A DNA stretch of 64,000 bases. Origin: Rhodosorus marinus CCMP1338. Lineage: Eukaryota; Plantae; Rhodophyta. Shown here piece after piece: positions 2,042-57,093 of the stretch. The first letter of the stretch is position 1; each line of letters opens with the position of its first letter. Location of the stretch: contig JAMWBK010000003.1 in the NCBI GenBank assembly GCA_029953675.1, positions 1,736,001 to 1,800,000 of the forward strand, in the 5' to 3' direction. The notes below the pieces were generated by a model, which was not told the origin of the DNA, ran no database searches, and worked only from the letters and a program-made list of their open reading frames with translations. A program made the position numbers and the translations under genes.

Positions 2042-2739
2042 GATAAGTTCTGAGCAATTTATCGACCATTGATTCAGGTACGCAAATACGATGACGTCGA
2101 TAGAGGACGTTATTCCTTTTGACAAAACCCTGCTCCGCATATTCTGCAGGTCGCTGATAGATCGCCGCAAACTCTGGATCGCGTAGGCACGCCTGCGGCC
2201 AGTCCACATCGGTCGTAATCGACGATACAGCCAGTTGCTGGATGGCGTGTCTGCTTAGCGCATCCGCAATGTTGTCACTGCCTTTTCTGTATTCGATAGA
2301 AACCTGGAAGGGCATCAGTCTGTTGATATATCTTGCCTGCCTCTTCGTGAGCTCCTTCTGCCACCGGATAGTTTTCTCTTTCAGCGGGGAGGAGTTGTGA
2401 CGTCCTGACATGACATCTGGCAAAACAAATTGGTGACGAAGAGGTAGGCAAGATATATCAACAAACTGATGCCCTTCCAGTTTTCTATCGAATACAGAAA
2501 AGGCAGTGACAACATTGCGGATGCGCTAAGCAGACACGCCATCCAGCAACTGGCTGTATCGTCGATTACGACCGATGTGGACTGGCCGCAGGCGTACCTA
2601 CGCGATCCAGAGTTTGCGGCGATCTATCAGCGACCTGCAGAAATGGAGCAGGGTTTTGTCAAAAGGAATAACGTCCTCTATCGACGTCATCGTATTTGCG
2701 TACCTGAATCAATGGTCGATAAATTGCTCAGAACTTATC
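2042..2739. repeat. Inverted repeat of pol: ~305-bp arms (2042-2348 / 2436-2739) with an 87-bp spacer containing a PPT and LTR start
   Basis: Minus ORF 2025-2423 and plus ORF 2469-3869 share MPFQ.SIEYRKGSDNIADALSRH...MVDKLLRTY. I counted four substitutions and 3 bp of indel between the arms. Confidence 0.95.
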
Positions 2740-3930
2740 ACGACGAGCCAACGGGAGGTCATTTCGGCACTACCAAAACTCGGAACCTGATCAAGCGCAA
2801 ATACTATTGGGCGACCTTGAGGCAGGACGTTGAGAAACGTCTGAGCACCTGTGCAATGTGTCAAAAGCAGAAGCCGCTCCGATATTCAACCGGCACCCTG
2901 CAACCTTTACCTATTCCCGACGGAAAGCTTCAATCCATATCAATGGACTTCATCGTCAGCCTAACTAAAACGGAGGACGGGTTTGACTCGATCCTAGTCA
3001 TCGTCGATCGGTTCACCAAGTATGCCCGTTTCCTACCGACAACGACAACGGCGACGGCGCAACAAACCGCGAAGCTGTTCTTACGTCATTGGGTTAGGTT
3101 CGCGGGTATACCTAGAGACATCATTTCTGACCGAGACCCAAAATTCACGGGCTTTTTCTGGAGGGAATTGTTGAAGATGCTGCGAGTAAGGCAAAACCTG
3201 AGTACAGCCTACCATCCACAATCAGACGGACAAACAGAAAGAACGAACCAGACCTTGGAAACGTACCTGCGATGTAATTCAACAACCACAACTTGGGCGG
3301 ACGACCTTCCTACGGCAGAGCTGGCCTACAACTGCCAAGTTTCAGAGTCTACGAAGTTCTCCCCCTTCGAGTTGCTTTCCGGAAAGAACCCGACTTTGCC
3401 TCCCGATCTTACAGTCCCCGATGCTAACGGCCCTTCATTGTCATTACCTGAAGCCGCAACCATTATGTTACAACGACAACAAGACCAACGAGACCTAGCC
3501 CGCGCCAACCTACGATATGCCCAAGAACGCCAACGCTTCTACTATGATCGAGGCAAAAGAGACCTCCACTTTGAACCAGCGAATATGTGCTCTTGTCACA
3601 CGGAATCTTCAACTCCCAGATTCAAAAGTTTTTCGGCCCAGATATATGTTGGACCGATTAAAATTTTACGCAAAATTGGTAACGTTGCGTATAAGCTGGA
3701 GCTCACTGGAGATTCTCAGATGCATGATGTTTTTCATGTATCACTGTTACGAAAGTTCAATGGACCTGAACCTGAAGGCTCGCCCGTAGTTCCTGTACTA
3801 CAACCAGCAGTACCACAACGAGAGTTGCGAAGTCAGTATTGGGATATCGACGAGACGAAAAGAACCTAAATGAATACTTCGTCTACTTTGAAGGCGAGAC
3901 AACGGATGATTTGAGATGGCTACCCTACCA
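2418..3930 (+). pseudogene. pol: Gypsy pol 3' part: RNase H end, zinc-binding HHCC, integrase core, GP(Y/F)-like region and frameshifted chromodomain-like tail
   Basis: Motifs: YRKGSDNIADALSR; H..PTGGHFG...C.MCQ; SMDFIVSL; SDRDPKFT; STAYHPQSDGQTERTN; GPIKI...AYKLEL..HDVFHVSLL; EYFVYFEGE...RWLP after the frameshift. There is an in-frame TAG at 2445-2447. Confidence 0.9.
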
Positions 3931-4036
3931 TCTACTACCGCAGAACCGGACCAAGAAACAAATCCGGTATTATACGAATCTCCACAAGGCAGCTTCTTCT
4001 GCCACCGGATAGTTCTTTCCTTTAGTGGGGAGGAGT

Positions 4037-4290
4037 TGTTGCGTCCTGCCCGAACAAGTCAGCTGTCAGGAGTGTAGCCCAAAACAAGGCTAATAATAGA
4101 TAAGTCTAGATCTAATAATAGTACTCTAGCAAACCCAAGACATGAACCGGAAGCCTATAAATACGGAAGTTACGACCTTCCGTCTTAGGATTAGAGCTAG
4201 AGGAGGAGTATCCAAAATAGAAAAAGATAAAACAAAAAGGGAATTTAAGTTATTTTGGATCACCTACACGCGTTGACGGAGAACGTGTCA
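4037..4290 (+). repeat. 3' LTR (254 bp, TG...CA) preceded by a PPT at 4024-4035
   Basis: AGTGGGGAGGAG PPT, then TGTTGCG...TATAAAT...ACGTGTCA. Confidence 0.9.
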
Positions 4291-28600: not shown

Positions 28601-28779
28601 ACCGATCAACCCACGTCAGCGAAGGACGAGCGATGCTCAACCCGTCCCTGTGGAAGGGGAATGCAGTACTTGGCACTTAGGCACCTCGAGTTCACGAAGG
28701 GAACTATGAGATCGTCCCTCCAGTAGAACGTATGCACACAACGCATCAGGGATTTTTCGTCGCATCTATAGACTCTTTC

Positions 28780-39250: not shown

Positions 39251-39943
39251 CAACCTTCCGCTGATGTGCCGATTGTTGATCTACTTGTCCACAAAGAAGT
39301 TCCAGACAAAAACTCCCGCCCTGGTCAAGACGAAGAGAAAATAGAATGCAACTATCTATCTTCTGGACGAAAAGAAGTCTTACAACCTTCAGATTGCTGG
39401 TGTGGGTCTATAGATCAACAGTGTGGGACCCCACTTCGATCCCAACGTACCCAACAAAAAAATTGTTGGATGATGATGAGCTTGTTCCCAAAGCTGTTTA
39501 TGTGGCGTTTCCACAGAAAAAAAAAAAAAAAACAGGAATCTGTCTCGTCTCTTTCGTGAGCAAGATGACCGTGGCAAGGACGTGCGGAATGGAAACCAGG
39601 TTTCGTCAGTGCCTTCTGACAACAACAACAACCATCTTTCTTCTCTCAACCGTAGCCAAGAAGGATGGGATGATAAGGAGTTTTCTATAGGTAGGGAAGC
39701 AGTTTCTTGCCGATCCACGAAAAAGAGAAATCTGTCTTGTCTTGTTTTTGAGGGTGGAAGGGACGCAAAGTAGATGTGACAGGAGAGGACATCCGAAGTT
39801 ATACAAGCGTCGGTGAACCTGCTCAAACAAAACAGCTTAGGAGCTTATCTGCAACGGCCCACCCCCGACGCCATTCTCGGCATATGAGGTGATGGGGGGA
39901 AAACAGAAAAACGGGTCGGAATCCCCAGACTGACTAAAAATCA

Positions 39944-40098
39944 CCAACGACGAAAAAAAAAATACGGAAGCCGTGAAAGGAAGAGAATCACTTAGACAAG
40001 ATATACTTTAGAAGGAGCAGTACTTTAGAAGGAGCAGTATATCTTGTCTAAGTGATTCTCTTCCTTTCACGGCTTCCGTATTTTTTTTTCGTCGTTGG
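39944..40098. repeat. Hairpin: 64/63-bp arms (39944-40007 / 40036-40098), with the centre formed by a 17-bp tandem duplication
   Basis: The arms are reverse complements apart from A10 vs T9. TACTTTAGAAGGAGCAG occurs twice (40004-40020, 40021-40037). Confidence 0.95.
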
Positions 40099-40900
40099 AG
40101 ATTTTAATCCATCCCGAACATGCTCGAGGATCAGGTGCCTCTTCCGAAGGAGTGTCCACCTCCTTCCACACAGACCTCAAAACCTTTGAATTTAAAGGGA
40201 AACAGGGGGTTATTCATATATCCAAATATTTCCAAGCACGTGTCTTTGAAAAGGTTTATCGGACTCTTAAAGTACTATATGATCTTCGTACAATTTTAGT
40301 ACAGTACCTGATTTGCCTTCCAGTTTTACATTAGATTAGATTTCGGTATATTAGTATATACTGTATATTGATCTTAAATGTCACTCACAGAATTAGGAGT
40401 TGATGGCAATGGGGGGATTTTGGCTGGTTGTTTTGGTGAGAAGCAGTCAGAGCGCGAAAGTGATGAAGGTAATGTCTCTAGTGGCTGGCAAATAGACGAA
40501 ATTATCAATCTCTAGTTTTAACATCGTCTCGTTCTTCCCCCGTACCCGATAGCATCGATTGCTAGCCCGGGGATCAGCAGGTTTCGGACCGAGACTGGAG
40601 GAAGAAGATGAAAACGGTTGAACAGGCTTAGGCAGCCTTGCGTTGATTCTGAAATCAGAAAGAAAATTTGCTAGCTTAAAGGAGACGAACAACGAGAAAG
40701 AAGATATTATATTTTGCGAGCCTCGGCGATTTCCGAGTGGGGAGATGATGGCACGAGGACGTTGTTGGTACGGCTTTTGGATGGCGTAGGGAGGCCGCAC
40801 TGGTGGAGGTGTTTTTTTTGAAGTTCTGAGGGTTTGTTTCAGAAAAAAACAGAAGACGCTGCGACGGAGGGTACTCCTCCAGACTGTATAGGCCGCTGTA

Positions 40901-43951: not shown

Positions 43952-46523
43952 TCATCTGGTTATCCCGGAATTCACCACCTCCCCTCTCACTGTCCCTGCA
44001 GACTCAGTGGCAGGCTCGCTAATGTCCATCATTGCAGGCGAGCTTTCTTGAGGCTCGTCTCTAGCAAACTGCCCCGCAGCAGCTCCGTTCTCCAGCGGCT
44101 TCGTGTTCTCCATGACAGGGGCGTCCATAGATGGCTGGATAGTCCCAACTCTCGATTCCAATGCATGAGCATCGACATGGGCGGCATCCGAAGCGGCTGG
44201 CTCGGCAATGGCGATTGACGGGGAAGACAGGGTGTCCGGTACTGGTGCATGAAGGGGTCCAACACCAGCTTGTGCAGTCGGTGGTGCAATAGAAGGCGGT
44301 ACTACAGAGGCTGGTGCCGTCGCAGGTGGAGTCGTCGCTGCTGGCGCTGGTGCATTCGCTGGTATTGCGACTGACCCTGGTGCGGTCGCAGGTGCAGTCA
44401 TAGATGCAGTCATAGGTGCCGTCACAGGTGCCGCCCCACCGGTCGTCACAGGTGTCGTCACAGGTGTCGTCACAGGTGTCGTCACAGGTGTCGTCACAGG
44501 TGTCGTCACAGGTGTCGTCACAGGTGCCGTCACAGGTGCCGTCACAGGTGCCGTCACAGGTGCCGTCACAGGTGCCGTCACAGGTGCCGTCACAGGTGCC
44601 GTCACAGGTGCCGTCACAGGTGCCGTCACAGGTGCAGTCACAGGTGCAGGCACAGGTGCAGTCATAGGTGCAGTCATAGGTGCAGTCATAGGTGCAGTCA
44701 TAGGTGCAGTCACAGGTGCAGTCATAGGTGCAGTCGCAGGTGCAGTCGCAGGTGCAGTCGCAGGTGCAGCCACAGGTTCAGCCGCAGGTGCAGCCACAGG
44801 TGCAGTCGCAGGTGCAGCCACAGGTGCAGCCACAGGTGCCGTCGCTGGTGCAGCCACAGGTGCAGCCACAGGTGCAGCCACAGGTGCAGTCGCTGGTGCA
44901 GCCGCTGGTGCAGCCGCCGGTGCAGCCGCTGGTGCAGTCGCGGGTGCAGCCACGGGTGCAGCCGTCGCTGGCAGGGTCGTGGATGCGGCTGCGCGTGCGG
45001 GTGGTCCCGACTGCGGCCCAGTCGATGTCATGCTATTTGCATGAGGGAGTGGCTCAGGTGGACCACCATACTTGGCTAGAACGGGCTCAGGCTTGAACAA
45101 GTTCTTATCTCCTGCAGCGTTCAACCCATGACCACCGCTGGCTGGCGTTTTCTGGTGTCCGTCTTTGTTTGGCATATCAGGGCCACCGCCCACAAGCTTC
45201 TCCTTCTTCGCTTCGATCGGAACGGTGGTGTCAGGATGCGGATGAGATGACGGCGGCTTTATGGCAAATGTAGCCAACTGAGGAGACGGATTGGGTGCCA
45301 TCGGGAAACGAGCCCCTGGTTGCTTTCCCATAGTTGTTGGTGCAACATTAGCGCCCCGAGGGGGAACGAAGCCCGGTCCTGATCCCTTTCCATGAGCCTG
45401 CATATTCCCCGGCATTGACTGCATGGTCCCTGTCCCAGCATTTTGAGGCAAGCTTCTTCCATACTGAGGCCCCGCGTATTGCTGATTCGGTACGGAAAAC
45501 TTGTTCATCTTGGGATGAGCCTGGTTCTTTGCGTGCATCGGCGGGAACTGAGGGGTAGGGTCCTTGAGCTTTGTTATGACGGGACCTTCAGCAGAGTGGA
45601 GAAGAAGCAGTTGGTTAGCCCAGAAAGACCTTGCAGTTTACGAAATATGATAGATCTAGTACCTTGACACGGAGGTGAAAACCGTGGCATGCTCGAACCC
45701 TCGGATCTTCGCGCTGCTTCTCGTTCCAGTCTCTTCTGATATTTTTGTGCATGAGTCCGAACCTAGTCCAAGAGAATCCGCATTAATTAGATGAAAGGTA
45801 TCAAGTTCGTCTATCCGAAAGCCACTTTCAAATAAAAGACCCTTAAGGGATTCTAAGATCTCCTTCATACTTACTTGTTTAGGCGTTCGTGATCGGACGT
45901 AGCGCGAAACTGCTACATAGTTTTTATCACCGTACATTTGACAAGCTCGCAAAAATCGCTGATGCTCCTCTTGAGTCCAATATCTCGTTTGCGACTGTTC
46001 AGTAAGTCTCATTCTGCGGGCAACGAGATCATTCAAATTAGACTGGTATACCGCTTCGACGCAGTTTCCTTAAAATGACAGCAGATACATACCCTTCGTC
46101 ACTCAACAAATCCGTTGACATTGGGGCCTCTCCATGCCCATGTGGTGCACTTTCGGGCATTTGAGTCATTGTTGGCGTCCGCGCCTCAACTATACTAGTC
46201 TCTATCGGGCGACCTAAGTCGCCCGGAATATTCTTCTCGGAAACAGGTTCCTTGGCAGGTGGTATCAACCTGGGGCCATTGTCAACTGAGTTGTTCACCT
46301 TCGGCCCATCATAAAAATTCGCAGAGTTCGCTAGCGAAGGATGAGACGATCGTCCCGCCAAGGACTGTAACGTTCTTATTCTCTCCCTAGTCCTCCGAAC
46401 CTTCTCCTCCAGCTCGTGGATTCTCTTCTGTTGTTGAATGACCACGTTATCCAGTACATACCGTGGGATATATAAATATTCATCGCCGTTCCCAGCGCCT
46501 GACCCTTCCTCTTCGAAATTCAT
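43952..46523 (-). CDS. Single-repeat Myb/SANT (SHAQKY-class) transcription factor with an N-terminal coiled coil and a long Pro/Ala/Thr-rich C-terminus
   Basis: RYWTQEEHQRFLRACQMYGDKNYVAVSRYVRSRTPKQV spliced to RTHAQKY. Upstream exon 46038-46523 and a large final exon 43952-45538. Confidence 0.88.
44379..44966 (-). repeat. Coding 12-bp minisatellite, ~49 units (APVT/TPVT/APMT/APAT/APAA)
   Basis: The plus strand shows blocks of ggtgtcgtcaca, ggtgccgtcaca, ggtgcagtcata and ggtgcagccaca units, in frame within ORF 43952-45538. Confidence 0.95.
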
Positions 46524-48414
46524 ACGTGCCGAAAACCTATCACACAGAATAATTCTTCTTCACCACTATACATCGACAAAGTCCAATCCCCTAACTCCCC
46601 TCCCCCCAAAAAACCCAACTCCCAAACAGCCGAAACCTCCCGCTTCCACCTTTGCAACTACTTCATCCCAACTGAAACAAAAACACAGAAGAATATTCCC
46701 CTATATGCACCTTAGTATACAATTTTAAGTCTCCATTGAGCAGCCTTTTCAACTCACAACAACCCATCCCTCCCACCCCCTTCACGACAACCCTCGCGTA
46801 TCAGAAGCGAACCAACTCCTTTGTCTCTGACAGCAGCCGCGTTGGAGCTTCAGACGTCATCAGAGCAATTGACGGGAAACTCTCTTTCTCCCTCTGTCTC
46901 TGCTCTCTTTCTGTCTTTCCCTTTCTCCTCCTCTTTGGCGAAAAAAAATTAACTTCTCTTTTTTTACCTTTTCGAAGAAAAAACAAAATTGAACAAAGAA
47001 ATGAAGGAATAAACGATTACCATTGGCTATAGAATAAACGGTTCAAATAATACAGAAATACTTTTTTTGAAACACGGGCCCTTGAAATTGTTTTAAAAAA
47101 AGGTCGTGGATGGCCCACTGTTCCAAGTCCCAACGAACAAATAAAACAACTCCCGTTTTTTCCCGAAAGAGATCACGAATTAATGCGAACAGCTGTAACC
47201 CCTATTCCGTTTTCCGCATTCTAGTTTTCCAATGTCTGCCCTAACCCCTATGCAAAAATAGCGAATATTCTCTAAAACCTTGTAATTAGTTTTTAATGTT
47301 AAACTCTGTCCGACTCCTATTGCGCAACGCACCCTCCACAGTATATATTTACCACCCGGGCAGATACGTTTTTCATAGGATTTCATACCCAGGGTAAAAA
47401 CCTACTCGTTTTACCTAAGTCGATATGAATCCAGGAGGTCAACCTCGAGGGAATACCTTTTCTTCAAAACAAAATCGAATGTCTCTTATTGCATCTTTTC
47501 GTCCTGAGATAACGTCTTTTTATTGGTTTAAAATATCGTACGCGTGATTAGTTCGGAAATCAATAATCCACGTCGGTCGACGAACCCGCGAAAATCTAAT
47601 ACAAGACAGCTATTCGAAGCAAGCGAATCTGGCGAATGGACAGCTGTCATAAAAATTGATTGTATTGTCAGGTGAAAGAAGTATTTTGTTTTTTCTTCCA
47701 CAGAGCGCTGGTTGCTGATTTGGGATGCTGTTTGGGGAGTGCGCTTTGGGAGGGAGATGAGGGTGGCTGGGCGTGTGTGTGTGTTTGTGTGTTGTGACTC
47801 TATACAAGAATCGTTTGTTAACTTGAGAAAACGTCGGATCCAAGAAGAGCGCGTGACTTTGCGTTTCAAAGGAAGAATCGCTGGCGTTTACAGGGAAAGA
47901 GCCCGAGGTTTTTTGTTAGAGATGTGTCGGATCGGAAGGGTGGGTCCCTCAAGGCGACGTAGAGCCGGGAACGAGGGGTGGGGTGTGGACTGGTTCTTCT
48001 TGGGAAAGAGAAGGCCTTGATGACTAGTGGGAGTATTGTTGCCGAGGTAAGCGGGTTCGCTCGAAGAAATGCTTGAGGAAATATGGGTGGAAAGTCGAGG
48101 AAAGAATGCAGAGAAGCAAGGTGTTGACTTCAACTGGGTCCGCTTGAACCAGGACATTGTAGCAGCGAGCCATGCACTTCTAGGCAGACTTCAACCAGGC
48201 TGCCTCCAGCTTGCTCTTGGCTCGTTCGGCTTCCGCGGCTCTGCTTCGCCACAGTCCGTTGTCGATTTTTTGTTTTCCTTTGACTGCGGATCAGCATCCA
48301 GCTTCCGGTTTCGATGGGGTTGGTCTGTACCATCGCCTAATAGTCCAAGGCAATCTGCTTTGCTACCTGCATATCCCCATCAGCTTGAGTGACCGCTTTC
48401 CAATCCCCATTTGA

Positions 48415-48747
48415 ATGAATGTGTTTATTGATGGGATCCCGGGGGTTGAATTCTCGTCGGTAGGAACAAGGAGCTCCGCGGGGTGGATGGACTGCCGTCA
48501 TGCCCAGTGTCGGATTTTCCCCAATTTTTTTTTTTCGAGCTCCCCCGCGGAACTCCATGTTCCTAACGTCATGAACCCCGATGAACGCCAGCGTCACTCT
48601 GTCTTCCCTTACCATCTGTCCCCAACGTTGGAAGAAAATTACTCTGCCTATTACGCTCTCTATTGAGAGGGGTTGATCCTGCTGAATATGCTGATGGTCA
48701 ACATCCAGGCGCCCTGTCCACCAGAGGTAAACTGATTCCGAAAATCG
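48415..48747 (+). mobile_element. Degenerate non-LTR reverse transcriptase core fragment
   Basis: With one frameshift it reads VFID...FSSV...W...RQRHSVFPYHL...LE-LLCLLRSLLRGVDPAEYADG (compare RQG..LSPYLF...YADD). A roughly 70%-identical copy by eye lies at ~52260-52380. Confidence 0.55.
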
Positions 48748-49422
48748 GGATCAACCCCTCTCAACAGAGAGCGTAATAGGCGGAGTAATTTTCTTCCAAC
48801 GTTGGGGACAGATGGTAAGCTTTATTGGGCAGCCGCCTAATGCGGCGTAACACTGAGTCTATCACTAACTAGAGAATTACTGACGATAACCCCGCTACCG
48901 GGGTCGCATGCTACGTTCTAAAGAAAAAACAGGGACCACTGGATTGTCCAGCTGGTCCACACGCAGAGCGCCTAGTGCGACTTCTGCGTTCCCCTGCCAA
49001 AGGTGCCTGTTTAGCTGAGCGCGTACGTCGCTCAACTCCTCGCACCTCCTACATCGTTGCGAGGAGTTGAGCGACGTACGCGCTCAGCTAAACAGGCACC
49101 TTTGGCAGGGGAACGCAGAAGTCGCACTAGGCGCTCTGCGTGTGGACCAGCTGGACAATCCAGTGGTCCCTGTTTTTTCTTTAGAACGTAGCATGCGACC
49201 CCGGTAGCGGGGTTATCGTAAGTAATTCTCTATTTAGTGATAGACTCAGTGTTACGCCGCATTAGGCGGCTGCCCAATAAAGCTTACCATCTGTCCCCAA
49301 CGTTGGAAGAAAATTACTCCGCCTATTACGCTCTCTATTGAGAGGGGTTGATCCTGCTGAATATGCTGATGGTCAACATCCAGGCGCCCTGTCCACCTGA
49401 GGTAAACTGATTCCGAAAATCG
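48608..49422. repeat. Nested palindrome A-B-A'-C-loop-C'-A-B: 297-bp arms (48748-49044 / 49058-49354), 13-nt loop, flanked by 140-bp direct repeats (48608-48747 / 49283-49422)
   Basis: Read directly from the sequence. About 3 mismatches between the arms and 2 between the direct repeats. Confidence 0.97.
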
Positions 49423-51199
49423 TAGAAAATCGTCATCCTCGAAAACAGTATGTTTTCGATAGCATAAACCAAAAAAAAGAAATTTTGTTCTACACCAAAT
49501 CCCAGCTAAAAGCCTAGAAAACAGGTGCGTTTTCCTCTCTAAAAAAAAACTCGTCTAGACTTGCTCCGCAGCCAAATGTTCAAGAGACGGGCTGGAGTCG
49601 CCCATTCCCTACTAAAGCAATGAAAACTGTCCCTTTTCCCGATTTCCAAGCTTCAGCAGCGCGAGGGAATCTAGAAAAGCCCTCTCCCCATTTGACCCAA
49701 CCCCACAAATATCCACTTGTGGCCGCTCTAGGAACAGATGAGAACGAGCAGCAAAAACCAGACTTCAGGCTTCATTGGGGTTCATCTTATCCCAGACTAG
49801 AGCCAGAGATTCGATTATACTATTTCTATCGTGATGTCAGCGACAGCGCAAAACAAAATCCTTATAGAAAGCACCGTTTAACCCGCTCACTTCCAAGAAA
49901 TTAAATCTGAAGTCCAATTGTCCCTTAAACAAAATCCGCGACTAGAGGGTTCTCCGTGGCGCCAGCCTCAACAAATGCAAGATGATGACTGTTAGGCGGG
50001 TGGTATGATACTCTTCCACAGCTAGTGGTGTTGGCAAGCAAATCCGCGATTCTCGTTGACCTTGCTGATCTAGTCTTCAGCTTTTGTGGTGCTTTGCGCT
50101 GTCTGTGTGTCAGGGCATCTTTCTATGCCGTCCATAGTACGCGGATATTTTCGTCCAAGCTTTCCTCACGAGGTGTGGGGTGAGATCCCCGCAGTTCTTC
50201 CAGTTGTCCTTCGACCTACAAGCCGGTCCCACCAACCAGAAACTTGCTTTCTTCAGCTTGGGACGAGCCCCAGGGTAAAAACTGTGCGATGCCCAGTGCA
50301 TATACCGTTTCTCGAAAGATGATTTTGTCATGACATGGGGAAAGATTAAAGCTATTCCAGGCAGCGTACCCCAAAATTCGACCGTCATCATAGCCGCCGT
50401 CGTTCCGAAAAATCTATCCCAACACCAACACCACTTTCCGACAGGACCAGAGATCAGCGTTTCTGATATAAATGAAAGATATCTTAGAATGCAGACGATA
50501 GTTTTGTTAAAAATTTGCTCAGACCGATTTCTGTATCTGTTCATGCATCGCTTAGGCGACTCATAGCGACGAGTGATGCAAAAAAAAAACACACTATTTT
50601 TGTCTATATCCCGTTTAAACCCGGTAGGATACTGCTAGACTACCTTAACTACGCCATTAACCAAAACATATATATTTTGCCCAGGATTTCCCCTAAATTA
50701 TATTAGTCCAGACCCGGAATGGTCTTTGCAATAGATTGATTGACTAAATTCAATTTCATGTTGTTCTCTATTAGATTTCGTAATTATCGTAAACTTTAAG
50801 AGTTTTCTTCATCTAAATTAATTTTTTTCATTCTAATTGACGAAGTTTCCGCCGCTTACGAGCTAAAAGTATATTTTTATTTTCAATAGTTTTAGCAGGG
50901 ACAGAGAGAACTGCTTTTTAATGGACAGGCGTGAATGGAAACCTTGTGGTGCCAGCCACGGAGTGACTCTCTGGTAGGGGTGGGTTTTTGTTAGACAATT
51001 GGATTTCAGATTTCTTCGCTCCGAGGTGAGCGGCGGAGAGTGCGTGGCGTTCTATACGGTTGTTGTTTTGTTTTTTTTTGGCTTCAGCTCACCGCAGTCC
51101 TGGTGTTGGGCATGGGTCCAGAATTTTTTGCCTCAGAAGCGTATCTATATCGGTGGACGAGTGTGGAGGGAGGATATTGCACGCCAGCGCAAGTGGGTT

Positions 51200-51500
51200 C
51201 ATCCGACGAATGGTACCAGTTTGCCATCGCCGTGGGAACGAGCACCCAGAGCCGGCCAAAGCTTCACTTCCGTCGTGTAGGAGTGTAGAAGGGCATCTGT
51301 TCCAAAAAATGCAATGCGCGCAATATACTCCTCCATCCAGTTCAGTATTGGTTATGCTCTCAACGCCACTGTAACGGAGCTTACAAAATTTCGAGATTAC
51401 CGTCCCGCTTCCTCCCTCACGCAACAGTTCAGAGCTACCACGCGAGAGGGAGAGCCCACCACTGCTATGCCGACGACAAATCCCCAGCAAAGCTTTCAGT
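51200..51500 (+). mobile_element. Possible degenerate non-LTR RT fragment
   Basis: TAT GCC GAC GAC (YADD) at 51466-51477, with a GV*KG-like remnant upstream. The frames are broken. Confidence 0.4.
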
Positions 51501-52129
51501 AATCACGTGCAAGGGAGTCCGCCACCCCGATGGCGACGACATAATCCAATAGAAAACTAAAACTCGGGTTCCAGAGAATCAAAACAAGAAGAAAGTTCTG
51601 GTGGATGTGGGACAAAAAAAAAATTCACGTGCTAAAGAAAACAACCCATCAAAAGACACACGCTCCCGCTAAGGAAGTCCCTTAGCCCCCGACTAAAATA
51701 ATGATGAAGGAAGTGTCTTCATGACGTTCTTGAAATCTACAGTACCTCATAAAAAGCCCCAAACAGCACATCACGCTGTGTTTGGAGGGGGGAGTATCCA
51801 CCTTTGATCGTCAATGGATTCCTTCCGAGTAAAACTACCCAAAGTACCTTCTCCCGGCAACGAATGGATCGGAGGCACCGGATGGGAAGAAGATAACTTT
51901 TGGAGAGGTTTACTACTTAAAACACTCCGAAATGAATCTAATCTCGATGCGAAAGGTTTTCTCGCATGGATATATAGATTAGAGGGGGATTACCAAAGGT
52001 TAGTTTTCAATAAGGACGACACCACGGTTTTCTAAGCATACATGCCAACGATTAGACGCACGAGCTGGATCTGAGGGTAGTAGTGTCTGAGAGTCGCTCA
52101 TGAGCGGTCGATGAGCGGTCGATGCCTGT

Positions 52130-52390
52130 ATGGCACAACTCCTAAGCGGACTCTCACACTACTACCCTCAGATCAACAAATGGATCTCTTGTGCGGGCAG
52201 AGTTACCCCCTTCTTTACTCTACCCCTATCCATCATACCGTTCTTCGACCCGGCCCGGTATGCCGGAGTCGTTCTGCCTTTGCTCATCGTCTATCCCTTA
52301 AGCAGAATGTAACTACTCTGCCTACTACGCTATATAGAGGAGGGGGGTTGATCCCGCAAAACAACCAAACGGTCAACAGCTCCAACCTTC
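52130..52390 (+). mobile_element. Degenerate non-LTR RT fragment homologous to 48580-48700
   Basis: tactctgccta.tacgct.t.ta..gag..ggggttgatcc.gc and ggtcaaca are shared, and the mostly transition-type similarity extends ~40 bp further upstream. Confidence 0.6.
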
Positions 52391-54459
52391 CCGCCCCTAA
52401 AAGGCAACCCACCGCCGAACCGCGTCTGCCCGCCCCAAGAGTCCCTAATCAGATCCGCAACTCCCGCCCAAACACCCTCTCAAAATAACTTTTATTCATA
52501 AAAGTTCTAACCATTAAGGTACGCCCAAAATTCCCCAAACAATCGAAGAGGACCCAGAATATCCTACTTTTTTCTACTTGAAAACCATATCACGCCTACA
52601 AAGTTCGTTTCGTAAAAATTACTCTACTTCATGACCAATATGTTCAACAAGGAAATGATTTGATCTACATAATTAATTTCATAATTCAATATTGTTGGTC
52701 ATTGGGCAAAAAGGCAAATCTTGCTTTCAAAAATGTACGAAGCCGGGCTAGAATAAAAACGGGGCTTTTGGACGGTTTAGCACCGAAATTAGGATTCATA
52801 TTCTCAAATTTTCTTTAAAATCGGGTACCGCGTCACGCTATCAGATTCTTGAAAAAACTAAATGGAAACTGTCTTGGTCTATGTGGATCCCGTTTGTTTC
52901 TTTTCTATATGAAGAGCACGGAGCCATTCAATCAACTCAATCATATCAGCTTTTACTCTTTTATCTGCTAACACTCTAGAGGGGAAGGTTTCGGATGCAA
53001 TTCGAAGTTTCTTGTTGTTTTTTTTTGTGCTGGTTGGCATTTACGAAATCTTCATATGGCCCTAGATTAATTTTTAGCATTTAGTCTAAAGTCTCCACAA
53101 CTATGTTCTCTGCTGGAGACTAGATAACTTTGGATAGTTTGGATCCATTCGGTTATTCAACGGGAAAAAGACGATTTTGTTTGGAAAACGACCAGCGATA
53201 AAACTTGACAAGAGGCGAGGATATTGCTTCTCGATCCATCTGCAGAGTGAGAGTAAGAGTGAAGAAGTATGGAAGGTATGCACCACCAGAACTAGTTTAC
53301 ACACTTTTCGGTCGTCCCCTTTCGCTCTCGCAGGACACCAACAAGGGAGGGTCCATTCGCTCTCCAGTAACTGAGAACAACTAGCCTAATTTCGACCAGC
53401 AGATAGTGCTTGCGACGCTGACCTGATCTGGGCAACATTTCGCTTTTCATCAATCGTTTTATAAAATTTTCGATGGCTTGTTTGTCCCACGACCTTCAGA
53501 CCTTCATGGGAAGTGGTGGTCTCAGGTAATCATTTAAGAAACTTAAAGATCTTGTCAGTCCCGATCAAGTCCCACGCTGACGTCAAAAAAACCGGGACTG
53601 ATTTATAGAATTTCAATTTTTGCTTTTCTGCACGACCCGACGAGAGGCTTTTTCATCGTTGAAGACAAAATCCAGCACGAGGGGTTTACCTCCCGTTGAT
53701 GAGAAGCACTCCAAATAGGATAGTCACAAGCGGTCTAATAAATTTTCCCTCGGATTGAGTATTGAATAAATGTAGAAAATTATAGTTTGGGTGGCTTGGA
53801 ATCTTATGAAATACTTGTCTGATTAATTGTCCGCTAGACTAGTAGTCAATCATCTCTGGTCTGTAATTCCCATATGTTGAATCATGGTTACTTCTGAGAT
53901 AGACAGGCTGTCCTAAAAATCTAGCAGTTTCTCAGAATGCTCAGATTCAGAAAGTTGGTGCGAGTGGTAATCCTCGGGGGGTGGGGAAAGAGAAGATTTC
54001 TATCGGTCAATCTAACTCTACCGTTGTTGCCCGTTCGAAATGCTCCACCCCGCATTTCTTTGAGCGGTCTTGACTTCGCCCCAATGTTCTGGGCCAGCCC
54101 CGCAGAGTACATCTCCAACACGACTTCAACTCTCGCAGAGTTTATGCTTCTGGGTACGCAGTCAAAAGCTTTTATACAACCAATACCACAGACGCACCTG
54201 GAAACTCTCCGTCTGGAGTTCGTGTGACGGGGTTGCTACTCTCAGTGTCACAGTGGGTCAGTATTGCTGACTGGTCGTGGCTGGCGCTAGTGGATCGTGA
54301 TTTGGGTTTAGGAGAAGGGGCCTTTTCTTGGTTCCGGAGGGTATTCTTGCTGGTTCGAGGGTAGACTGGCGTAAGATTACCTTCTCTAGGGCTCTGTCGA
54401 GCTTCCGAGTTTCCCGAAGCAGGGTGAATTCCAACCAATCAAAATCGTTGATTGAGTAA

Positions 54460-54508
54460 TATCGGACGTCAATCGGTCGTATCGGACGTCAATCGGTCGT
54501 ATCGGACG
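54460..54508. repeat. 20-bp tandem repeat x2.4 (TATCGGACGTCAATCGGTCG)
   Basis: Exact copies at 54460, 54480 and a partial copy at 54500. Confidence 0.95.
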
Positions 54509-54609
54509 ATCTTCTATATTAATTTCTAATTCAGGAGATAGAAACTTATATCAGACGCAAACCAGAAGACTATTGAAAATAATTATTCAAAAATTCATGC
54601 TTTAGCTAT

Positions 54610-54651
54610 TTATATATCTGTGTCCGATAAATATCGGACACAGATATATAA
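54610..54651. repeat. Perfect 20-bp-stem hairpin with a 2-nt loop
   Basis: TTATATATCTGTGTCCGATA-AA-TATCGGACACAGATATATAA. Confidence 0.95.
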
Positions 54652-55549
54652 GTCCAGACTTTTTTTGCCAGCGGCATGGATATGACAACCCTAGACCAAG
54701 CACCTAAACCCCACAAACGCCAAAAAAATATATATATATATCCAACAACGTCTCCTAACGAGGTGAAAACCCGAACATTTCTTTTCAACACATGCCGCGG
54801 CCCACGAGCGAAATAATTTTTAATTCTTTTTTTCAACCTCCTAAAAACAACGTCAAACATAGTCAAGACTAGACCCACTCTTTTTCGTTCAAAATACCAT
54901 ATTTTCTGTGATGTCCTTTTTCTTCCAAAAACCAAACTATGGGACACCCGTTCTGCCTCAAAAAAAAGGAGAAAAAAATCGTGTCTTGAAGACTATTGGA
55001 TTTGCCGGGAGGGTTGGGCCGGTGGGAAAAGGGGGGGGTGGGCCGCGGAAAAAAAAAGTTTCCCAAAAGGCCCCAATAAGCACAACTTGAATGTCTTGGG
55101 ATGTGCCAATTAAAATAGGAAGTCATTTGTTTCTAATATTTTTTGGGAATGGATTTTGCTTTCTGAAAGAATCGGGAGAATCTGTGACCAGAAATCCGGG
55201 CGGGCCCACCGGTGGGAGGAGGATCGGGAGACTTGGTTGCCGAGGCAGTTGGGGGAAATGGGGGTAAAATTTTTTTTTACGTTTTCTGGAGTAGAGAATA
55301 GGAAGGAGAATCTGGAAAAAGAACATTTGCAGGGTTGGTGGTGGGGGACTAAGGTTGGGAGGTGGGGAGGGTTAGTCGTTTCTTTTGTTGGAGGAGGTGC
55401 TCGTGGGAGGAGTTCTCGTAAGTGAGCTCAAAGTGGAGTAAGTTTGGAGTGGAGTAAGTTTGGTTGTAGTCTGTTGGTTGTGGGGGGGGAGGGGCGCGGT
55501 GGGGCCTGCAATTTCTGAGGAGGGTTTTGGGCTAGGCTCGTGGGGCAGG

Positions 55550-57093
55550 ATGGAGAATTTTGCGGACGAAGCGGTTGAGTGGAAGGGCGATGACATACTT
55601 TGTGATACTGTGGACAAGGTCTGGTTTACTAATTCCGGTGATGGAAGGAGGGTAAGGGCTTTAGAATTGTCCATGTCACGTGTACGAGGAAGTCTGGGCA
55701 GATATGTACTGAGTATCGTAGAGGAGCTGACCAGGTTTTCTGTTGTGTCTTTTCTCCGTAGATTGAACTGCACGGAATCAGTCAGAAGTTCCTGGAATCT
55801 GTCGCAGTTCGAGACTTGAAACTCAACTTTAACGGTTATCTTGTGAACGTCACAAGAGTGGACCCAACCAAATGCACGGTTGAATTTGACCCGGAGGCGC
55901 TCCCTACAAATCTAGACATGGACCAGATTCCTGTGAATGTTGTTATTCGGGGGCAGCATATGGACTCGAAATGGGATTACAATCACACCACGGCGGTCGG
56001 GCAGGCTGAGCCAGATCTCCCTGACGCGTCAGGAGCCGACAAGAAGTTGAGTACAGAAGTGGCGAATAAGCAGGAGATGTTTCTGAGACGGCTCCGGGGC
56101 GAGGGGCATATGGGCTACCTGCTTCTGGAGCAGTGTTTGGCCGAGTTACTGGGAACCATGATCATCGTGGTCTTTGGAGTAGGTTCCGTATGCACTGCAG
56201 TCCTTACGGAGGCGCAAGTGGGAATTTGGCAAATCGCAGTTGTATGGGGCTTCGGAGTCGCGTTTGCTATTTACACGACTGCATCGATTTCCGGTGCTCA
56301 CCTTAACCCAGCGGTGAGCTTCACCTGCATTCCTCTTTGATCTCATATGTCTGTTGCTGATAGGCTCTTCATGCTCGTCGGTTGAGCTTCCGCAGGTCTC
56401 GCTAGCTTTTGCAATGTTCAGGCCGCTTGACTTCCATTGGAAGAGGCTTGTTCCTTACTGGATAGCACAGATCCTGGGCGGCATGCTGGGTGGAGCTATA
56501 AACTTGGGTATCTTTAGAAAATGGTACGATCTCAAAGACCCAAACCGGGATACGCTTTTGTACGCTTCGACGTTTGGGGAGTATTTTCCGAACCCGGGCT
56601 TGTGGCCCGACCCGGAGGATCAGAGCCTGATGTACGTCGCGGAATGTATGGCTGTTGAAGCCTGGGGAGCCGGGATTTTGATGTTTATGATTCTCGTCTT
56701 TACCGACCCAAGGAACCAAGCCCTGAAGTCGAAGGACGCGGCTCCGTTCTTAATTGGGTTCACTGTCGCATCGTTAATATCTCTTTACGCCCCATTGCAG
56801 CAGGCAGGGTAAGTTGCTCCTGCTCAAGCTGGATTCACAGTCCCGCGACGATTCCTGGCGCTGACTCTGATAGAGGTGTTCATCCATGACTTTCCCTTAT
56901 TCTCTGTAGGTGGAATCCGGCGCGCGACTTTGGCCCGCGAATTATCGCCGCAATTGCCGGGTATGGGACGATGGCTATCCCGGGACCTCGAAATGGGTTT
57001 TGGGCATATATTGTAGGCCCGCTTATTGGGGCTCCTCTAGGAGCTCTCGTGTACGATGTCATCCTTGCAAGAGGCTTGCGAAAGTATGACTAG
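55550..57093 (+). CDS. Aquaglyceroporin (MIP family, GlpF/AQP3-like) with a long N-terminal extension, multi-exon
   Basis: CLAELLGTMIIVVFG, SGAHLNPAVS, and a second box WNPARDFGPR. The Asp after the second NPA is the aquaglyceroporin signature. WAYIVGPLIGA follows. Confidence 0.93.

Follow-up and report, generated by a model that had tools for sequence, protein, structure and literature searches.

An 815-bp nested palindrome in a nuclear contig of the red alga Rhodosorus marinus that looks like a repair scar

DUP-TRP/INV-DUP rearrangements of human genomic disorders were reportedly described by Carvalho et al. in 2011, and plant tandem duplications with filler DNA arising after break repair are said to have been described by Gorbunova and Levy in 1997 and by Schiml et al. 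in 2016. The plant duplications originate from adjacent single-strand breaks or from double-strand breaks. A further system in which inverted and direct segments meet is the 5' inversion of L1 by twin priming, reportedly the finding of Ostertag and Kazazian in 2001. Cases related to DUP-TRP/INV-DUP have been documented (PMC5120786). Break repair in yeast gives rise to local fold-back inversions, and the inserts recovered there include two fragments from one distant locus, placed in inverted orientation with short gaps between them and with 0-4 bp of microhomology at the outer junctions; the explanation given for these inverted inserts is that displaced single strands underwent fold-back synthesis and were then captured by end joining (PMC11724301). 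The scars of SD-MMEJ and of polymerase theta come from the same kind of process (PMC2943611, PMC5728401, PMC5068794). Long inverted repeats are in themselves frequent in the genomes of eukaryotes (PMC8728187).

Here we analyzed a window of 64,000 nucleotides (64 kb), about 1,736,001-1,800,000 of nuclear contig JAMWBK010000003.1, in the assembly GCA_029953675.1 of Rhodosorus marinus CCMP1338 (PMC10250338); positions below are those of the window unless the contig is named. The assembly was built from Nanopore reads with NextDenovo and polished in three rounds of Pilon with Illumina reads. The initial annotation of the window had described a nested palindrome at 48608-49422, which corresponds to about 1,784,608-1,785,422 of the contig, in the interior of its 3.35 Mb and between unique flanks. 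All coordinates and lengths listed for this architecture hold. The features of the locus and of its surroundings are as follows.

End near 46523, minus strand: set of open reading frames with a Myb domain, the nearest upstream coding signal
48449-48579, no strand: older imperfect inverted repeat in the upstream flank U, with 33-nt arms that are 82% complementary and 59 nt between them
48588-48607, plus strand: U tail (about 20 nt), the end of the upstream flank U, colinear with the paralogue and marking U/A1 as the putative native junction
48608-48679, plus strand: A1 (72 nt), first direct copy, with the putatively ancestral bases at both variable sites
48680-48747, plus strand: B1 (68 nt), loop of the alternative A1-B1-A2' hairpin, ending at the blunt B1/A2' junction
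48748-48819, minus strand: A2' (72 nt), inverted A, the outer 72 nt of the left arm, with the putatively derived site-1 base in common with A3
48820-49044, minus strand: C (225 nt), left copy of the putatively foreign segment, reverse complement of C'
49045-49057, no strand: spacer (13 nt), CCTCCTACATCGT, asymmetric, the center of the palindrome
49058-49282, plus strand: C' (225 nt), right copy of the putatively foreign segment, its right end forming the putative C'/A3 breakpoint
49283-49354, plus strand: A3 (72 nt), third A copy, the outer 72 nt of the right arm
49355-49422, plus strand: B3 (68 nt), second B copy, running on into the AT-rich flank D
49415-49433, plus strand: perfect 10-nt tandem repeat GAAAATCGTA in 1.9 copies, straddling B3/D; B1 breaks off directly after the first GAAAATCG
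52068-52174, no strand: imperfect hairpin upstream of the paralogue, with 27-nt arms and a perfect 11-nt tandem repeat ATGAGCGGTCG (2.3 copies) in its loop
52263-52424, plus strand: old paralogue of the unit of about 160 nt, matching the U tail, A and B; sole relative of the unit in the 71 kb searched
Start 55550, plus strand: aquaporin (MIP) gene, a gene call, the first downstream of the palindrome

Across 48608-49422 the segments follow one another in the order A(72)-B(68)-A'(72)-C(225)-13 nt-C'(225)-A(72)-B(68), B being present twice and C as one inverted pair. The three copies of A (direct, inverted, direct) and the near-perfect 297-nt arms reported earlier are both present: the main inverted repeat, 48748-49044 against 49058-49354, is 99% complementary, with 3 mismatches in 297 nt (48765/49337, 48869/49233 and 48882/49220) and no indels, and homopolymer runs have equal length in both arms, which differ by substitutions only. 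A second inverted repeat pairs 48608-48679 with 48748-48819 over 72 nt with 2 mismatches and 68 nt between the arms. The direct repeat, 48608-48747 and 49283-49422, spans 140 nt and is 99% identical, its 2 mismatches being T at 48645 against C at 49320 and A at 48723 against T at 49398. The whole structure is thus a 140-bp direct duplication (A-B) around a 535-bp filler (A2'-C-spacer-C'), the outer junction B1/A2' being blunt with 0 nt of microhomology. Flank D has a G+C content of 33% (49423-49522) compared with about 50% in U, A, B and C, and the step is sharp and falls exactly at B3/D. The palindrome is far beyond chance. The predicted RNA folding energy of the 815 nt is -676 kcal/mol versus -253 +/- 7 for shuffled copies, about 61 standard deviations beyond them, and the predicted DNA energy of the A1-B1-A2' hairpin is -89 kcal/mol versus -22 in shuffles. 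By these energies the main hairpin and the alternative A-B-A' hairpin, the latter already proposed in the initial annotation, are both predicted to form. As a purely physical prediction, the locus could extrude a cruciform or, if transcribed, give a long hairpin RNA.

Set beside the described systems, the locus resembles DUP-TRP/INV-DUP in its three copies of A with an inverted middle copy and in the duplicated B at its flanks. It differs in scale, which is 72-140 bp here and not kb to Mb, in having no pre-existing inverted low-copy repeats that could have mediated the first switch (none older was found at the switch points), and in that C, 225 nt with no local source in 71 kb, makes up most of the palindrome. 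The short direct duplication of 140 bp and a filler composed of scrambled local and apparently foreign DNA are like the plant filler duplications; unlike plant filler, which is usually tens of bp long, the filler here contains a near-perfect palindrome of 607 bp, and this is unusual. With L1 twin priming the locus shares the placement of an inverted segment immediately before a direct one that has a fixed 3' terminus, but the upstream part is inverted there and duplicated here, and the locus has no retroelement sequence, tail or target-site duplication. The inverted copy of break-adjacent sequence (A2') is also a feature of fold-back templated insertions, although here a 140-bp direct duplication accompanies the insert. 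Like the yeast inserts, the locus has an inverted pair that appears to be foreign, with a gap of 13 nt as compared with about 2-20 bp in one yeast mutant and 30-119 bp in another, and an outer junction within the range of 0-4 bp of microhomology, the value at B1/A2' being 0; its arms of 225-297 nt are longer than those of the yeast fold-back inserts, which have medians of 50-150 bp (PMC11724301). A pair of long inverted arms of high similarity around a short loop, and a predicted capacity for long hairpin RNA, are properties of the loci collected in LIRBase as well; the arms are below the 400-nt cut-off used there, and the origin would be a local rearrangement and not two adjacent transposons (PMC8728187). 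By analogy with these systems, the locus looks like a repair scar of a recognised type, left by error-prone break repair or by error-prone replication.

The surroundings of the palindrome are poor in coding signals. No gene was called in 49996-55550, and a search of 46.6-55.3 kb for conserved protein domains found none. By this evidence the palindrome lies in a gene-free gap of about 9 kb flanked by two divergently oriented genes. On the minus strand, 43952-45538 holds an open reading frame of 528 aa consisting mostly of a 12-nt (4-aa) tandem repeat, APVT/APAT/APMT, in more than 40 units with a core at 44247-45100; it has no Pfam match and corresponds to no complete protein on record, and it probably belongs, as an exon, to the Myb-domain gene next to it. 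The gene-free interval that holds the palindrome also contains a perfect 20-nt tandem repeat of 2.5 copies at 54460-54508 and, 100 nt past it, a 42-nt hairpin (95%) at 54610-54651.

The ancestry of the A-B unit can be followed through its paralogue 3.7 kb away. The ancestral unit would have been about 160 nt long, 48588-48747 corresponding to 52263-52424, and the match is weak but real (nhmmer E = 3e-7, core about 75% identical); BLAST found it as well. In ungapped colinear comparison the head of A agrees with the paralogue at 17/29 positions (empirical p about 1e-4 per position) and the tail of B at 23/43 (p about 6e-5). Over the last 20 nt before A1, the only part of U to match in this comparison, 13/20 positions agree with 52263-52282, whereas the end of C', the 20 nt before A3, agrees at 6/20. 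Beyond the unit of about 160 nt the same comparison found no similarity further upstream or downstream, and the end of C', D and A2' each lack colinearity with the paralogue. A test of the upstream homology by local alignment with harsh penalties was not significant. Since the paralogue matches the tail of U and not the end of C', U/A1 appears to be the native junction and C'/A3 a breakpoint, which suggests, on short and modest support from these alignments, that upstream-A-B is native and that C is foreign to the locus. The same conclusion had been drawn in the initial annotation from a homology at 52260-52380 said to continue upstream of the first A; that homology is real, but its span is rather 52263-52424 and it extends about 20 nt upstream.

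Beyond this paralogue no further copies of the A-B unit were found in the 71 kb, and the unit matched no Rfam family, also in a relaxed search at the paralogue. A coding origin of the unit was considered and rejected: a stop-free frame of 134 aa over the paralogue was searched against 1.84 billion representative proteins without finding a homologue, and its Pfam matches did not rise above noise. The A/B junction carries a 12-mer, GGTTGATCCTGC, at 48671-48682 and 49346-49357, and the paralogue has GGTTGATCCCGC at 52348-52358. The conserved 5' end of 18S rRNA in eukaryotes has the sequence GGTTGATCCTGC as well; a relic of this rRNA at the junction was rejected, no SSU model matching at E <= 10, and the identity is probably a coincidence. 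A scan of prokaryote genomes gave no match to a 34-mer across the A/B junction, and a metagenome scan none to the conserved motif of A. An unrelated imperfect hairpin lies a short distance upstream of each copy of the unit of about 160 nt (48449-48579 and 52068-52174).

For segment C, the window and 7 kb beyond it (71 kb in total) contain no other copy, and an exact-word search with a 25-mer of C gave no match in metagenome and viral collections. Nine open reading frames of the composite locus matched nothing among 5.8 billion proteins, including transcriptome (MMETSP) open reading frames. Alone, C' is predicted to form a row of short hairpins, with a fold better than that of 200/200 shuffles (z = -3.5). 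A weak similarity to C' was seen at 28616-28732 (nhmmer E = 5e-4, roughly 60% identity over 117 nt); this stretch has diverged much too far to have served as donor of C, and the similarity may be due to chance or to a distant relative of that donor.

We consider it fairly probable that the locus is a genuine complex rearrangement of non-coding intergenic DNA, in which fold-back synthesis together with end joining made a 140-bp duplication around a 535-bp filler. The ancestral order would have been U-A-B(-D). Break repair or the restart of a stalled fork would have joined a foreign piece, spacer plus C', to a second A-B, by which the C'/A breakpoint would have arisen; a free or nascent 3' end would then have turned back on itself at the spacer and used its own strand as template for 297 nt across this breakpoint, giving A'-C; and a blunt junction of the end-joining type would have sealed the excursion to the end of the first B. 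This would be the most economical course; we infer all three steps, and several orderings are possible. That the C'/A3 breakpoint recurs in mirror image as A2'/C implies that the chimeric junction predates the inverted copying and that the fold-back ran across the breakpoint. At the site 48645/49320/48782, A1 and the paralogue have T, whereas A3 and A2' have C, and at the other variable sites A1-B1 retains the state of the paralogue. This pattern fits A1-B1 being the original copy and A2' having been copied from A3. The order of events rests on the one shared substitution, and gene conversion from arm to arm could give the same pattern. The divergence of about 1% between copies (3/297 and 2/140) means that the events are not entirely recent, and it does not allow their ages to be told apart. 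Purely replicative template switching would seldom leave a blunt return junction, a point against the explanation that we prefer.

Serial template switching or fold-back, which the initial annotation had put forward, is the best available mechanism, but the target-primed reverse transcription offered with it has no positive evidence. The proposed route would not need a reverse transcriptase (RT). The annotation had also placed the palindrome inside the remnant of a non-LTR RT and had seen it as centred on RT catalytic-site sequence, reading the peptide LLCLLRSLLRGVDPAEYADG as the approach to an RT YADD motif. This peptide is indeed one reading frame of A-B, but the frames of A-B matched neither RVT_1, the profile against which the annotation had proposed to check them, nor any other Pfam family even at E <= 10, and 'YADG' is a four-residue coincidence. 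The six frames of 48000-50100 gave noise only (E <= 1) and no RT, endonuclease or transposase domain; the same three kinds of domain were absent by Pfam from the open reading frames of 47.5-55.8 kb and, at E <= 0.01, from 268 stop-free segments of at least 75 aa scanned across the window. That scan returned ordinary cellular domains and one Ty3/gypsy integrase (2448-3866). The flanks of the 815-bp element have no poly(A) tail and no short direct repeat or target-site duplication, the only repeat being that of 10 nt in 1.9 copies at B3/D. Given the negative Pfam scans and the missing tail and target-site duplication, the locus does not lie inside a recognisable RT remnant. Template jumps by retroelement RTs are blunt, as is the B/A' junction, and the two direct copies share their end point; since LINEs classed as CRE/SLACS make up 9% of the R. 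marinus genome, one could imagine target-primed reverse transcription of a retroelement RNA with its 3' end at B, with snap-back self-priming and end-to-end template jumps. This course of events is highly improbable in our view, not only for want of an RVT or endonuclease domain, of a tail and of a target-site duplication, but also because the paralogue makes U/A the native junction, so that A-B would already have been present at the target, and because the unit has a single old paralogue in 71 kb.

Other explanations bear on whether the palindrome exists in the alga, where C came from and whether the hairpin does anything. An assembly built from Nanopore reads with NextDenovo and Pilon could contain chimeric fold-back reads, or an error of either program, in place of a palindrome that is absent from the alga, and look-ups of a DsbA-like and of a SET-domain open reading frame from the window each led to this one NCBI contig only, no independent assembly of the locus having been found and the protein and DNA scans having given nothing. 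Yet artefacts of fold-back reads have arms of read length and not of 297 nt. Unique sequence flanks the palindrome, which lies in the interior of a 3.35-Mb contig, its 3 substitutions with 0 indels even in homopolymers look like well-polished, truly diverged copies, and several unrelated internal palindromes of similar quality occur in the same window; an artefact is therefore unlikely. It is similarly improbable that C-spacer-C', or more of the locus, is the captured non-coding constant region of a mitochondrial minicircle inserted by end joining. Abundant NUMTs and recombinant minicircle concatemers have been reported for R. marinus (PMC10250338), and C' is rich in hairpins and apparently foreign to the locus; however, such an origin would leave the copies of A unexplained and would only name the donor of C. 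Published minicircle primers for R. marinus cover coding regions only. As a source of C within the fold-back and end-joining scenario, with which it is compatible, minicircle DNA is a fair candidate.

A near-perfect stem of 297 bp would be an ideal Dicer substrate, and long inverted repeats that give siRNA are common in eukaryotes (PMC8728187), so the locus might be conceived as a long-hairpin RNA (siRNA) gene, or else as a transposon of the foldback/MITE type. An Rfam-type search of the window found no known RNA reaching its gathering score and no tRNA, and a relaxed search with RNA models gave only miRNA-precursor matches to the perfect stem at 61 bits against a gathering score of 90; we attribute these to the perfection of the stem, which makes it a generic hairpin. 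C has no known target, and the open reading frames of the locus are without match in the protein searches described above, MMETSP included. Against a mobile hairpin stand the lack of a target-site duplication and of other copies in 71 kb, and the fact that the arm ends repeat the local sequence next to them, as the ends of a transposon would not. Both forms of this proposal seem very unlikely to us. The palindrome shows no sign of function and we regard it as a neutral scar.

The palindrome is not the only one in the window. Self-complementary loci number 10 in the 64 kb and cover 2,334 bp (3.6% of the sequence), while 20 block-shuffled copies contained 0; 3/10 exceed 300 bp, and of the nine besides the 815-bp locus 3 are longer than 150 bp. 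A near-perfect palindrome of about 720 bp (98%, 87-nt loop) at 2029-2751 has arms at 2034-2136/2645-2747 and 2142-2348/2436-2642. Its right arm is the start of the 5'-truncated Ty3/gypsy integrase frame 2448-3866, which has no RT upstream and for which the protein collection searched contained no R. marinus genomic paralogues; in its loop, 58 nt are 86% like 3991-4048, and its left flank 1954-2027 is 84% like 4219-4290. It looks like a second product of fold-back or template switching, located at the truncation point of a retroelement. Close by, 1578-1927 is a palindrome with 148-nt arms (97%) and a 54-nt loop, followed by a hairpin with a perfect 33-nt stem at 1931-1963. The 12-mer TGGTCTCATCGC occurs at 1549, just left of the 1578-1927 palindrome, and again at 2030, at the outer end of the next one, and may represent microhomology at a switch point. 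At 39937-40105 a hairpin has 54-nt arms that are 100% complementary, weaker outer pairing, and a 28-nt loop region containing a tandem duplication of about 17 nt (ACTTTAGAAGGAGCAGT twice); tandem duplications in loops are thus seen in two hairpins of the window, this one and that at 52068-52174.

RAD52 is reported to be absent from the Stylonematophyceae, and its loss has been linked by the authors to microhomology-mediated recombination in mitochondria (PMC10250338). On account of a lineage reported to be without RAD52, of minicircles shaped by recombination and of 10 palindromic loci in one window, we put forward, tentatively and as a rather doubtful reading, that the locus is one case of a genome-wide habit, the nuclear genome of R. 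marinus being unusually prone to repair by fold-back or template switching and unusually tolerant of long, near-perfect palindromes with short spacers. By itself a single locus matters little, and the attractive link to an RT active site is not real. What it would offer is a natural case clean enough for the sequence to reveal the order of steps, from a chimeric junction to a 297-nt fold-back copy across that junction and finally to blunt sealing; if C were minicircle DNA, the locus would in addition link the capture of organelle DNA with palindrome formation. Only the genome-wide question is of more than routine interest: the palindromes in these 64 kb raise the question whether fold-back inverted duplications are in excess in Stylonematophyceae compared with other red algae, and such an excess, if found, would be informative about the formation and tolerance of palindromes in eukaryotes.
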